From Auanema rhodensis (taxonomy: Eukaryota; Animalia; Nematoda): DNA of 64,000 nucleotides. The notes beneath the pieces were generated by a model. It did no database searches. It was not told where the DNA came from and saw nothing but the letters and a program-made list of their open reading frames with translations. The stretch covers positions 23,374,001-23,438,000 of the forward strand of contig OZ059900.1 of NCBI GenBank assembly GCA_964057225.1, in the 5' to 3' direction. Each line of letters starts with the position of its first letter. Positions within the stretch are counted from its first letter, which is position 1. The position numbers and the translations under genes were made by a program. Below, piece after piece: positions 23,301-29,227 of this stretch.

Positions 23301-25370
23301 CTTTCACGACAAAAAAACAGGGGTTAGAAAATTAAGGAAATTAGCATATTCTGAGGGCACGCCCCTTATGGCTAATATTGATTAAATCGATTTTTGTTCA
23401 TATGAGTCGTCAAATGCAACGAATTTCAGCGTGTTACATACTAAAATGAAGCATTTTACATGCTGAACACTAGAAAAATACAAAAACACAGTATTTCCCA
23501 TGAGAAATATTTTATTATGCTGGAAAACCAGTTTTTGGAAATTTCGCAGTAAACAAGGTTTTGACTTACGATTTCATGTGTTCAAACTCATGCAATGTCA
23601 ATGAAACCTAGCTCAAAATTGTTCGTACAACGTCTAGTTCCACTTTCACGACAAAAAAACAGGGGTTAGAAAATTAAGGAAATTAGCATATTCTGAGGGC
23701 ACGCCCCTTATGGCTAATATTGATTAAATCGATTTTTGTTCATATGAGTCGTCAAATGCAACGAATTTCAGCGTGTTACATACTAAAATGAAGCATTTTA
23801 CATGCTGAACACTGGAAAAATACAAAAACACAGTATTTCCCATGAGAAATATTTTATTATGCTGGAAAACCAGTTTTTGGAAATTTCGCTGTAAACAAGG
23901 TTTTGACTTACGATTTCATGTGTTCAAACTCATGCAATGTCAACGAAACCTAGCTCAAAATTGTTCGTACAACGTCTAGTTCCACTTTCACGACAAAAAA
24001 ACAGGGGTTAGAAAATTAAGGAAATTAGCATATTCTGAGGGCACGCCCCTTATGGCTAATATTGATTAAATCGATTTTTGTTCATATGAGTCGTCAAATG
24101 CAACGAATTTCAGCGTGTTACATACTAAAATGAAGCATTTTACATGCTGAACACTGGAAAAATACAAAAACACAGTATTTCCCATGAGAAATATTTTATT
24201 ATGCTGGAAAACCAGTTTTTGGAAATTTCGCTGTAAACAAGGTTTTGACTTACGATTTCATGTGTTCAAACTCATGCAATGTCAACGAAACCTAGCTCAA
24301 AATTGTTCGTACAACGTCTAGTTCTACTTTCACGACAAAAAAACAGGGGTTAGAAAATTAAGGAAATTAGCATATTCTGAGGGCACGCCCCTTAAGGCTA
24401 ATATTGATTAAATCGATTTTTGTTCATATGAGTCGTCAAATGCAACGAATTTCAGCGTGTTACATACTAAAATGAAGCATTTTACATGCTGAACACTAGA
24501 AAAATACAAAAACACAGTATTTCCCATGAGAAATATTTTATTATGCTGGAAAACCAGTTTTTGGAAATTTCGCTGTAAACAAGGTTTTGACTTACGATTT
24601 CATGTGTTCAAACTCATGCAATGTCAATGAAACCTAGCTTAAAATTGTTCGTACAACGTCTAGTTCCACTTTCACGACAAAAAAACAGGGGTTAGAAAAT
24701 TAAGGAAATTAGCATATTCTGAGGGCACGCCCCTTATGGCTAATATTGATTAAATCGACTTTTGTTCATATGAGTCGTCAAATGCAACGAATTTCAGCGT
24801 GTTACATACTAAAATGAAGCATTTTACATGCTGAACACTGAAAAAATACAAAAACACAGTATTTCCCATGAGAAATATTTTATTATGCTGGAAAACCAGT
24901 TTTTGGAAATTTCGCTGTAAACAAGGTTTTGACTTACGATTTCATGTGTTCAAACTCATGCAATGTCAACGAAACCTAGCTCAAAATTGTTCGTACAACG
25001 TCTAGTTCCACTTTCACGACAAAAAAACAGGGGTTAGAAAATTAAGGAAATTAGCATATTCTGAGGGCACGCCCCTTATGGCTAATATTGATTAAATCGA
25101 TTTTTGTTCATATGAGTCGTCAAATGCAACGAATTTCAGCGTGTTACATACTAAAATGAAGCATTTTACATGCTGAACACTAGAAAAATACAAAAACACA
25201 GTATTTCCCACGAGAAATATTTTATTATGCTGGAAAACCAGTTTTTGGAAATTTCGCTGTAAACAAGGTTTTGACTTACGATTTCATGTGTTCAAACTCA
25301 TGCAATGTCAATGAAACCTAGCTCAAAATTGTTCGTACAACGTCTAGTTCCACTTTCACGACAAAAAAAC

Positions 25371-25426
25371 AGGGGTTAGGGGCGTGCCCTCAGAATATGC
25401 TAATTTCCTTAATTTTCTAACCCCTG
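25371..25426. other. Inversion (strand-switch) junction of the satellite array
   Basis: Forward ...ACAAAAAAACAGGGGTTAG joins directly to reverse AGGGGCGTGCCCTCAGAATATG.... The AG at 25378-25379 is shared by both orientations and no foreign sequence is inserted. Confidence 0.98.
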
Positions 25427-26443
25427 TTTTTTTGTCGTGAAAGTGGAACTAGACGTTGTACGAACAATTTTGAGCTAGGTTTCGTTGACATTGCATGAGT
25501 TTGAACACATGAAATCGTAAGTCAAAACCTTGTTTACAGCGAAATTTCCAAAAACTGGTTTTCCAGCATAATAAAATATTTCTCATGGGAAATACTGTGT
25601 TTTTGTATTTTTTCAGTGTTCAGCATGTAAAATGCTTCATTTTAGTATGTAACACGCTGAAATTCGTTGCATTTGACGACTCATATGAACAAAAGTCGAT
25701 TTAATCAATATTAGCCATAAGGGGCGTGCCCTCAGAATATGCTAATTTCCTTAATTTTCTAACCCCTGTTTTTTTGTCGTGAAAGTGGAACTAGACGTTG
25801 TACGAACAATTTTAAGCTAGGTTTCATTGACATTGCATGAGTTTGAACACATGAAATCGTAAGTCAAAACCTTGTTTACAGCGAAATTTCCAAAAACTGG
25901 TTTTCCAGCATAATAAAATATTTCTCATGGGAAATACTGTGTTTTTGTATTTTTCTAGTGTTCAGCATGTAAAATGCTTCATTTTAGTATGTAACACGCT
26001 GAAATTCGTTGCATTTGACGACTCATATGAACAAAAATCGATTTAATCAATATTAGCCTTAAGGGGCGTGCCCTCAGAATATGCTAATTTCCTTAATTTT
26101 CTAACCCCTGTTTTTTTGTCGTGAAAGTGGAACTAGACGTTGTACGAACAATTTTGAGCTAGGTTTCATTGACATTGCATGAGTTTGAACACATGAAATC
26201 GTAAGTCAAAACCTTGTTTACAGCGAAATTTCCAAAAACTGGTTTTCCAGCATAATAAAATATTTCTCATGGGAAATACTGTGTTTTTGTATTTTTCTAG
26301 TGTTCAGCATGTAAAATGCTTCATTTTAGTATGTAACAAGCTGAAATTCGCTGCATTTGACGACTCATATGAACAAAAATCGATTTAATCAATATTAGCC
26401 ATAAGGGGCGTGCCCTCAGAATATGCTAATTTCCTTAATTTTC

Positions 26444-26475
26444 TAACCCCTGTTTTTTTTAACCCCTGTTTTTTT
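26444..26475 (-). repeat. 16-bp tandem duplication inside a monomer (TAACCCCTGTTTTTTT x2), giving a 358-bp monomer
   Basis: Units lie at 26444-26459 and 26460-26475; the monomer spacing 26161 to 26519 is 358 bp. Confidence 0.97.
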
Positions 26476-29195
26476 GTCGTGAAAGTGGAACTAGACGTTG
26501 TACGAACAATTTTGAACTAGGTTTCATTAACATTGCATGAGTTTGAACACATGAAATCGTAAGTCAAAACCTTGTTTACAGCGAAATTTCCAAAAACTGG
26601 TTTTCCAGCATAATAAAATATTTCTCATGGGAAATACTGTGTTTTTGTATTTTTCTAGTGTTCAGCATGTAAAATGCTTCATTTTAGTATGTAACACGCT
26701 GAAATTCGTTGCATTTGACGACTCATATGAACAAAAATCGATTTAATCAATATTAGCCATAAGGGGCGTGCCCTCAGAATATGCTAATTTCCTTAATTTT
26801 CTAACCCCTGTTTTTTTGTCGTGAAAGTGGAACTAGACGTTGTACGAACAATTTTGAGCTAGGTTTCATTGACATTGCATGAGTTTGAACACATGAAATC
26901 GTAAGTCAAAACCTTGTTTACAGCGAAATTTCCAAAAACTGGTTTTCCAGCATAATAAAATATTTCTCGTGGGAAATACTGTGTTTTTGTATTTTTCTAG
27001 TGTTCAGCATGTAAAATGCTTCATTTTAGTATGTAACACGCTGAAATTCGTTGCATTTGACGACTCATATGAACAAAAATCGATTTAATCAATATTAGCC
27101 ATAAGGGGCGTGCCCTCAGAATATGCTAATTTCCTTAATTTTCTAACCCCTGTTTTTTTGTCGTGAAAGTGGAACTAGACGTTGTACGAACAATTTTGAG
27201 CTAGGTTTCATTGACATTGCATGAGTTTGAACACATGAAATCGTAAGTCAAAACCTTGTTCACAGCGAAATTTCCTAAAACTGGTTTTCCAGCATAATAA
27301 AATATTTCTCGTGGGAAATACTGTGTTTTTGTATTTTTCTAGTGTTCAGCATGTAAAATGCTTCATTTTAGTATGTAACACGCTGAAATTCGTTGCATTT
27401 GACGACTCATATGAACAAAAATCGATTTAATCAATATTAGCCATAAGGGGCGTGCCCTCAGAATATGCTAATTTCCTTAATTTTCTAACCCCTGTTTTTT
27501 TGTCGTGAAAGTGGAACTAGACGTTGTACGAACAATTTTGAACTAGGTTTCATTGACATTGCATGAGTTTGAACACATGAAATCGTAAGTCAAAACCTTG
27601 TTTACAGCGAAATTTCCTAAAACTGGTTTTCCAGCATAATAAAATATTTCTAATGGGAAATACTGTGTTTTTGTATTTTTCTAGTGTTCAGCATGTAAAA
27701 TGCTTCATTTTAGTATGTAACACGCTGAAATTCGTTGCATTTGACGACTCATATGAACAAAAATCGATTTAATCAATATTAGCCATAAGGGGCGTGCCCT
27801 CAGAATATGCTAATTTCCTTAATTTTCTAACCCCTGTTTTTTTGTCGTGAAAGTGGAACTGGACGTTGTACGAACAATTTTGAGCTAGGTTTCATTGACA
27901 TTGCATGAGTTTGAACACATGAAATCGTAAGTCAAAACCTTGTTTACAGCGAAATTTCCAAAAACTGGTTTTCCAGCATAATAAAATATTTCTCGTGGGA
28001 AATACTGTGTTTTTGTATTTTTCTAGTGTTCAGCATGTAAAATGCTTCATTTTAGTATGTAACACGCTGAAATTCGTTGCATTTGACGACTCATATGAAC
28101 AAAAATCGATTTAATCAATATTAGCCATAAGGGGCGTGCCCTCAGAATATGCTAATTTCCTTAATTTTCTAACCCCTGTTTTTTTGTCGTGAAAGTGGAA
28201 CTAGACGTTGTACGAACAATTTTGAACTAGGTTTCATTGACATTGCATGAGTTTGAACACATGAAATCGTAAGTCAAAACCTTGTTCACAGCGAAATTTC
28301 CTAAAACTGGTTTTCCAGCATAATAAAATATTTCTCGTGGGAAATACTGTGTTTTTGTATTTTTCTAGTGTTCAGCATGTAAAATGCTTCATTTTAGTAT
28401 GTAACACGCTGAAATTCGTTGCATTTGACGACTCATATGAACAAAAATCGATTTAATCAATATTAGCCATAAGGGGCGTGCCCTCAGAATATGCTAATTT
28501 CCTTAATTTTCTAACCCCTGTTTTTTTGTCGTGAAAGTGGAACTAGACGTTGTACGAACAATTTTGAACTAGGTTTCATTGACATTGCATGAGTTTGAAC
28601 ACATGAAATCGTAAGTCAAAACCTTGTTTACAGCGAAATTTCCTAAAACTGGTTTTCCAGCATAATAAAATATTTCTCATGGGAAATACTGTGTTTTTGT
28701 ATTTTTCTAGTGTTCAGCATGTAAAATGCTTCATTTTAGTATGTAACACGCTGAAATTCGTTGCATTTGACGACTCATATGAACAAAAATCGATTTAATC
28801 AATATTAGCCATAAGGGGCGTGCCCTCAGAATATGCTAATTTCCTTAATTTTCTAACCCCTGTTTTTTTGTCGTGAAAGTGGAACTAGACGTTGTACGAA
28901 CAATTTTGAGCTAGGTTTCGTTGACATTGCATGAGTTTGAACACATGAAATCGTAAGTCAAAACCTTGTTTACAGCGAAATTTCCAAAAACTGGTTTTCC
29001 AGCATAATAAAATATTTCTCATGGGAAATACTGTGTTTTTGTATTTTTCTAGTGTTCAGCATGTAAAATGCTTCATTTTAGTATGTAACAAGCTGAAATT
29101 CGCTGCATTTGACGACTCATATGAACAAAAATCGATTTAATCAATATTAGCCATAAGGGGCGTGCCCTCAGAATATGCTAATTTCCTTAATTTTC

Positions 29196-29227
29196 TAACC
29201 CCTGTTTTTTTTAACCCCTGTTTTTTT
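29196..29227 (-). repeat. Second copy of the same 16-bp intra-monomer duplication
   Basis: Units lie at 29196-29211 and 29212-29227, 2752 bp (8x342+16) from the first copy, with the same linked SNPs (AACAAGCTG, TTCGCTGCA). Confidence 0.97.

Follow-up and report, generated by a model that had tools for sequence, protein, structure and literature searches.

A strand switch in a satellite array of the nematode Auanema rhodensis, probable remnant of a fold-back inverted duplication

Satellite arrays in which the monomers change orientation are known from human alpha-satellite and human satellite (HSat) DNA, from Arabidopsis CEN180 and from the maize knobs. Inverted arms are also found in the human Y chromosome palindromes P1 to P8 and in the palindromes of the human X chromosome, which are gene bearing and whose arms are kept more than 99.9% identical throughout by arm-to-arm gene conversion. 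Inverted copies of the kind called duplication-inverted triplication-duplication (DUP-TRP/INV-DUP) are explained by fork stalling and template switching (FoSTeS) or microhomology-mediated break-induced replication (MMBIR), which are replication template-switch models of the same type as origin-dependent inverted-repeat amplification (ODIRA). Human constitutional fold-back inverted duplications have inverted microhomology of 2 to 8 bp, most commonly 2 bp, and an unduplicated spacer (Hermetz et al., 2014, PMC3907307), which in that series measures 766 to 70,466 bp. Here we describe a 64-kb stretch of DNA from the nematode Auanema rhodensis, called Auanema rhodense in the preprint cited below (assembly GCA_964057225.1, contig OZ059900.1, positions 23,374,001 to 23,438,000 of the forward strand). 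This stretch, which we refer to at its full length as the window, is an array of a 342-bp satellite whose monomers switch strand once.

Tandem Repeats Finder (TRF) divided the window into 74.2 copies of the 342-bp unit at 1 to 25379, with 99% matches, and 112.9 copies of the reverse complement of the same unit at 25378 to 64000, with 98% matches. When a single monomer was compared with the window by blastn, matches on the plus strand were confined to the first of these segments and matches on the minus strand to the second. The final plus-strand match covered monomer positions 1 to 60 (25320 to 25379), and the initial minus-strand match covered positions 99 to 1 (25378 to 25476). One monomer family therefore lies on opposite strands around a single point, the only switch in the 64 kb, at which monomer position 60 is joined to reverse-complement position 99. 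The AT skew changed from about +0.075 to about −0.07 in the 24- to 26-kb bin, where the sign of the GC skew also flipped. Both arms run to the ends of the window, giving at least 25.4 kb on the left and at least 38.6 kb on the right. An earlier note on this DNA had described one flip in midmonomer, with a shared AG at 25378 to 25379 and nothing inserted, and this was borne out by both TRF and blastn. It was also right about a 37-bp spacer at the consensus level, which is flanked by a perfect 67-bp stem; the first mismatch in the consensus-level stem falls at 25312/25484.

Immediately beside the junction, the two arms are related base for base, in a register that is one monomer out. Numbering the monomers of each arm outward, so that L1 and R1 are the ones nearest the junction, we found that R1 (25477 to 25818) matches L2 (24636 to 24977) without a single difference, rather than matching L1. 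L2 and R1 have five nonconsensus bases in common, two of which, 139C and 221A, are found nowhere else in the window, and the 117A of L3 recurs within the window only in R2. Aligned in this register, the left and right copies of the mirrored tract (Table 1) show no mismatches over 751 bp, six rare variants included, compared with 12 mismatches for the consensus register over the same span. Past the tract, the one-monomer-out register has 5 mismatches in the next 309 bp.

The junction thus has the parts of a fold-back inverted duplication. Adjacent true copies hold private variants in common, and they are separated by an unduplicated spacer, which is 301 nt at the variant level and 37 nt, unpaired, at the consensus level; the shorter figure arises because all monomers look alike. 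At the boundary between the spacer and the inverted copy there is inverted microhomology (AG at 25378 to 25379, CT at 25075 to 25076) without inserted bases.

Rare variants also relate the arms farther from the junction. The variants 167G and 179T are found in R3 and in its duplicate R11 and elsewhere in the window only in L8. Other rare-variant pairs connect L11 with R24, R29, and R36, L17 with R33, L20 with R35, L41 with R42 and R49, and L35 to L43 with R65. The median positions of the rare variants shared by the arms were correlated (Spearman rho = 0.82, p = 2e-4, n = 15). We also computed a monotone-chain score for the shared rare variants, which in mirror order reached 66.9, compared with 39.9 ± 7.4 for 300 random permutations (0 of 300 reached 66.9). 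With the junction tract removed, the score was 42.4, compared with 28.9 ± 4.7 for the permutations, 2 of 300 of which reached 42.4 (permutation p about 0.007); the reversed order then scored 15.8 to 27.3, the latter being its maximum over 110 shifts. When circular shifts of the right arm were taken as the null, 41 of 109 reached the observed score. Because such shifts keep the order of the markers, this null is uninformative, and random permutation and reversed order were used instead. A plain two-break inversion is disfavored by these scores, because it predicts either no relation or a reversed order between the arms. Judging from its variants, the right arm seems once to have mirrored the left arm and to have been stretched since then about 1.5- to 2-fold by local duplications, both arms having been overwritten by their own turnover.

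The extent of that turnover was apparent when the 74 left and 112 right monomers were cut out and aligned. The mean number of differences per monomer was 3.38 within the left arm, 3.97 within the right arm and 3.97 between the arms, the last corresponding to about 98.8% identity over 342 bp. Mirror partners, monomers of equal rank in the two arms, differed at 4.3 positions per 342 bp against this background of 3.97, which rules out a true giant palindrome. The earlier note had proposed at least 25 kb of near-identical inverted arms. This holds as a statement of satellite identity but not in the consensus register, in which the arms are no closer than random pairs of monomers. Its giant, near-perfect palindrome able to extrude a cruciform was overstated, since base-for-base symmetry covers only 67 bp around a 37-nt loop or 751 bp around a 301-nt loop.

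Each arm has acquired variants of its own: 43 rare variants are private to the right arm, 11 are private to the left arm, and 16 are common to both. A T in column 2 is present in 46 of 112 right monomers and 1 of 74 left monomers, C in columns 219 and 307 is present in 10 left monomers and no right ones, and T in column 250 is present in 17 right monomers and no left ones. Local duplications of blocks of 3 to 8 monomers were found in both arms (1 to 25319 and 25477 to 63803), and no higher-order repeat spans the whole array in the window.

The satellite could be identified from a preprint on Auanema rhodense (10.64898/2026.08.27.747507), which prints the 27-nt probe XT-2_488 (“X-elim”) used for fluorescence in situ hybridization. 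With no more than one mismatch allowed, this probe is found in 182 of the window's monomers, against 0 expected by chance, and the matches lie on the minus strand in the left arm and on the plus strand in the right arm. Judged by the probe sequence rather than by a full XT-2 consensus, the satellite is XT-2 of the Auanema rhodense X chromosome or a very close relative. Its 342-bp monomer falls inside the range of 167 to 504 nt that the preprint gives for the tandem-repeat units of this genome. The X has two terminal tandem repeats, XT-2 among them, that are restricted to the germline, somatic nuclei losing them from the 12-cell stage onward; the left and right repeat blocks of the X differ, and repeat accumulation is attributed mainly to replication slippage (10.64898/2026.08.27.747507). 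The assembly was made with hifiasm from PacBio HiFi reads of an inbred line, at about 29x coverage on the repeat blocks (same preprint). In the main text of the preprint the word “inversion” is absent, and “inverted,” “orientation” and “palindrom” refer to figure markers, read mapping and the elimination motif, so the strand-switch architecture is not described there. Since the satellite is the X-terminal, germline-restricted XT-2, which is eliminated, the suggestion of the earlier note that the switch might be a landmark of a (peri)centromere is not supported.

We rejected a connection between the breakpoints and the programmed-elimination motif (SFE) on the basis of published scan counts, the SFE sequence itself not having been scanned for in the window. 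A genome-wide scan found only 15 strong matches to this motif in eliminated DNA (10.64898/2026.08.27.747507), so the thousands of XT-2 monomers carry no SFE. Searches of the literature with strings of the monomer sequence gave no match, and searches for “342 bp” satellites returned nothing relevant. The Mesorhabditis satellites, with units of 11, 65, and 23 nt, do not match the 342-bp satellite.

Public sequencing runs bear on whether the junction is genuine. The runs were compared as Logan contigs, which are about 60 to 85 nt long. Within the 181-bp stretch from 25290 to 25470, 28 31-mers (starts 25350 to 25377) span the junction and are unique in the window, while all the other 31-mers of the stretch occur at least 102 times. 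Fourteen words had been sampled from this stretch; one run (X1) contained 14 of 14, three runs contained 13, and eight runs contained 12. On the simplest reading, two of the sampled words are junction words and X1 has both. X1 is an Illumina library, since its loose ends contain TruSeq adapter sequence. Depth dips at the junction, as expected whether or not the junction is real. Mirror symmetry over the full length of the read would mark a hairpin or a missing adapter, whereas the arms of the window differ in their private variants and the mirror ends 751 bp out; because of that end, a hairpin-read artifact is excluded.

Consensus 31-mers of the same stretch were present in runs (X1 to X18) filed under at least five organism labels, from several studies dated 2019 to 2024, and the summed word depth of the satellite 31-mers reached millions per bin. 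The many runs and the huge depth indicate that the repeat is very abundant and is common to isolates or to differently labeled close relatives. In one of these runs, X4, two contigs link the satellite at about 25275 to about 140 nt of unrelated sequence, with a loose end beginning AATAAGAAAAGACGGG. This joint may be an array border or the insertion of a mobile element in another isolate or species.

On balance, we think it probable that the window contains a real orientation switch in XT-2 that arose by a fold-back or template-switch inverted duplication, primed by microhomology and later scrambled by duplications and deletions of 3 to 8 monomers. The 3′ end of a broken or stalled nascent strand, ending ...CAGGGGTTAG at monomer position 60 (also written ...GGGGTTAG), would have used its terminal AG to anneal to the CT about 300 nt behind it, either on its own complementary strand or on that of the sister. 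Extension of the annealed end would have copied the array backwards, producing a palindrome with a 301-nt unduplicated loop, whose arms would afterwards have evolved as independent satellite arrays. Block duplications and deletions, together with the spread of private variants, would then have erased the base-for-base mirror, leaving only the 751 bp adjacent to the junction intact and the rare markers still in mirror order. We infer the replication error itself, the length originally copied, and the tolerance of the product through germline restriction and holocentric chromosomes.

The earlier note had offered a fold-back or breakage-fusion-bridge scar as the alternative to a centromeric landmark. 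The fold-back half of this proposal is supported by the 2-bp inverted microhomology, the 751-bp tract, the 301-nt loop and the mirror order. The classical breakage-fusion-bridge cycle is not a natural model here, because it needs a dicentric chromosome and rhabditid nematodes, this host included, are holocentric. Given holocentric chromosomes and an X whose left and right repeat blocks differ, we find it more plausible that an ODIRA- or MMBIR-like switch took place during replication and stayed within the array, its second junction then lying outside the window, than that a chromosome end was capped by a hairpin and went through breakage-fusion-bridge cycles. Three explanations would account for the abruptness with which the perfect tract ends, namely a breakpoint of unequal exchange, a second template switch and a recent arm-to-arm conversion tract; the first of these is suggested because R3 pairs with L8, four monomers past the expected L4.

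Several observations weigh against a fold-back origin. Two base pairs of microhomology, taken alone, are weak evidence. Between the 751 bp with 0 mismatches and the adjoining sequence with about 1.5%, the change is abrupt, and it also fits a recent arm-to-arm gene conversion or a short synthesis tract with a second template switch. About 10 independent markers underlie the long-range mirror order, which was put to the test once the pattern was already in view; with the markers touching L2, L3, R1, and R2 left out, Spearman rho fell to 0.55 (p = 0.10, 10 points). R3 and R11 still differ from L8 at 3 or 4 sites in the best alignment. The far end of the right arm lies beyond the window, which therefore does not fix the overall type of rearrangement. 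As to the reads, the argument from word shares is indirect, the identity of the sampled words not being visible; X1 may come from the same strain as the assembly; and among the 32 contig pieces listed, of about 61,600, none bridges 25379|25380.

The sharp edge of the tract and the many private, amplified right-arm variants that are missing from the left arm would both follow if the fold-back had copied only about 0.75 kb and the nascent strand had then invaded by homology a preexisting XT-2 array of opposite orientation, on the sister, on the homologue or at another place in the block, the right arm past 26128 never having been copied from the left. We regard this as unlikely: it does not predict rare variants in mirror order past the tract, and R3 and R11 carry the 167G and 179T that are otherwise unique to L8. 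Slightly less likely again is a junction formed by two-break inversion or end joining, with the 751-bp tract a later product of arm-to-arm gene conversion, as in sex-chromosome palindromes. A tract of 0.75 kb has a usual length for gene conversion, its boundary is abrupt, and a register shift of one monomer is easy between satellite arms. The reversed order, though, scores well below the mirror order (15.8 to 27.3 versus 42.4), and the tract starts exactly at the junction microhomology and continues unbroken from it.

Could the junction be an artifact, introduced in sequencing by a HiFi read that is chimeric or a hairpin, or in assembly by falsely joining, in the graph, two XT-2 arrays of opposite orientation? 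Long-read data are known to contain inverted chimeras as artifacts, the satellite is homogeneous over multiple megabases with HiFi coverage of only about 29x, and, as noted, the listed contig pieces include no bridge. We nevertheless hold an artifact to be quite improbable. Mirroring ends 751 bp out, and the junction is embedded in contiguous, nonmirrored sequence, with at least 25 kb on one side and at least 38 kb on the other. If an unrelated array had been joined on by mistake, rare variants in mirror order would not result, and the Illumina run X1 has all the sampled words of a stretch whose only nongeneric 31-mers span the junction. That the inverted layout is a selected element serving chromosome behavior, such as intrachromosomal X pairing or a kinetochore or pairing landmark, accords with the speculation of the preprint authors that X-specific repeats contribute to the unusual segregation of the X (10.64898/2026.08.27.747507) but is very improbable, given a sequence in which nothing suggests selection, a breakpoint at an arbitrary midmonomer site, arms that decay freely, the lack of an open reading frame (ORF) or Rfam family, and the discarding of the region from the soma.

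The coordinates of the features are collected in Table 1.

Table 1. Features of the satellite array and its junction, in window coordinates
Feature	Position	Strand	Basis
Left arm: 74 full 342/343-bp monomers (L74 to L1) and the first 60 bp of L0 (25320-25379)	1-25379	+	TRF, blastn segmentation
Right arm: R0 (positions 99 to 1, 25378-25476), 112 full monomers (R1 to R112) and one partial	25378-64000	-	TRF, blastn segmentation
Junction microhomology: AG common to both orientations; in a fold-back it would pair with CT at 25075-25076	25378-25379	.	
Consensus-level spacer, 37 nt: monomer positions 61-97, occurring once	25380-25416	.	
Hairpin-capable core: 67-bp perfect stem (25313-25379/25417-25483) around a 37-nt loop	25313-25483	.	
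Left copy of the mirrored tract: part of L3 (117A), all of L2 (4T, 139C, 220G, 221A, 350C), L1 positions 1-99	24326-25076	+	
Right, inverted copy of the mirrored tract: R0, R1, part of R2	25378-26128	-	
Variant-level loop (unduplicated spacer), 301 nt: L1 positions 100-342 and L0 positions 1-58	25077-25377	+	Register 25076/25378
16-bp tandem duplication, unit TAACCCCTGTTTTTTT, in R3	26444-26475	-	TRF, alignment
Same 16-bp duplication (unit TAACCCCTGTTTTTTT), in R11	29196-29227		
Right-arm blocks, e.g., R3-R10/R11-R18, R6-R10/R13-R17, R24-R27/R29-R32, R38-R44/R45-R51, R68-R83 in threes, R99-R104/R105-R110			
Left-arm block pattern: 6- to 7-monomer periodicity across L44-L74			

The 16-bp tandem duplication makes R3 and R11 358-bp monomers, 2752 bp apart, and its presence in both indicates that it was copied along with the 8-monomer block. 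The novel joint of this duplication follows GGGGTTA, within the 2-bp AG ambiguity of the left breakpoint of the inversion, a coincidence whose probability by chance we estimated at about 2%. There is a hint here that A7-C-A-G4-TTA is a site of stalling, slippage or switching. Monomer length varies in other ways as well. A length of 343 bp was found in 11 of the 74 left-arm monomers, and the right arm also has two 337-bp monomers. At 25427, a 1-base deletion in a run of seven T's (A7 in the plus monomer orientation) was a common variant in 4 of 4 sequencing runs examined, which matches the 342/343-bp length polymorphism of the window.

When 25300 to 25496 was folded as single-stranded DNA, the predicted energy was −98.7 kcal/mol (z = −28.8). 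No ORFs of at least 60 aa were found around the junction. We rejected a ribozyme or retrozyme satellite (hammerhead) and membership in an RNA family after an Rfam E-value scan of 24290 to 26520, which returned only subthreshold microRNA (miRNA)-hairpin matches on the junction hairpin. These matches, at 25331 to 25467, were to the plant miRNA precursors MIR1509, MIR8007, and MIR173, with 44 to 56 bits, under the gathering scores; they are a trivial product of a long hairpin and not evidence for an miRNA. We saw no sign of a function specific to the junction itself.

Neither satellite arrays that switch orientation nor inverted duplications of the fold-back type are new. The novelty lies in the setting, an X-terminal satellite that a holocentric nematode removes by programmed elimination, together with a junction resolved to the base and the evidence that a giant palindrome seen at the consensus level is a decayed one. 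Satellite switches are usually reported as cartoons, but this one has retained the signature of its formation in the microhomology, the unduplicated loop, the mirrored tract and the mirror-ordered markers. It also shows the speed at which block-wise turnover erases a palindrome inside a satellite, and it serves as a warning that “giant near-perfect palindromes” inferred from the consensus symmetry of satellites are mostly not palindromes base for base. The junction 31-mers provide a unique marker set for checking assemblies and comparing strains.

A tentative extension, which we think could be true but would not presume, is that recurrent fold-back template switching helps the multimegabase germline-restricted blocks of Auanema rhodense to grow and reorganize and that the XT-2 block is a patchwork of palindromes in decay, some older than others. 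If so, palindromic duplication would supplement the replication slippage published as the main source of repeat accumulation. Palindromes would be tolerated, since holocentric chromosomes avoid dicentric breakage and the soma discards the DNA, and A7-C-A-G4-TTA, where the 16-bp duplication also ends, would be a site favored for stalling or switching. The junction by itself gives a concrete mechanism, open to testing, by which germline-only blocks could in part have grown in a nematode that eliminates about 61% of its genome.

Compared with the human fold-back cases (PMC3907307), the XT-2 junction has the same adjoining direct and inverted copies, short spacer and 2-bp microhomology and likewise lacks filler. 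Its 301-nt spacer, however, is shorter than their 766-bp minimum, and the event took place inside a satellite, where the arms go on pairing by consensus whatever the register and the spacer looks just 37 nt long. A further difference is that neither a terminal deletion next to the duplication nor a dicentric intermediate is evident from the all-satellite window, and the chromosomes of the host are holocentric. The template-switch models, ODIRA (Martin et al., 2024, PMC10766183) and those for DUP-TRP/INV-DUP, resemble the origin proposed for the junction in that a leading-to-lagging switch at short inverted homology places an inverted copy within the segment and needs no dicentric. These models predict a second inverted junction and a triplicated segment, whereas there is one switch in our 64 kb and the right arm leaves the window, beyond which any second junction would lie.

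Like the sex-chromosome palindromes, the locus lies on a sex chromosome and consists of inverted arms with a unique spacer between them, and conversion may account for the identity adjacent to the spacer. Unlike them, it has noncoding satellite arms, which, instead of being near-identical in register throughout, lose their register identity after 751 bp. In layout the locus resembles the human, Arabidopsis and maize arrays, in which one monomer family likewise occupies opposite strands around a single point in a homogeneous array. Those arrays are centromeric, pericentromeric or knob DNA, whereas the XT-2 array is terminal, germline restricted and programmatically eliminated, and, unlike theirs, its junction is readable at the base level and keeps a mirrored tract with private variants.

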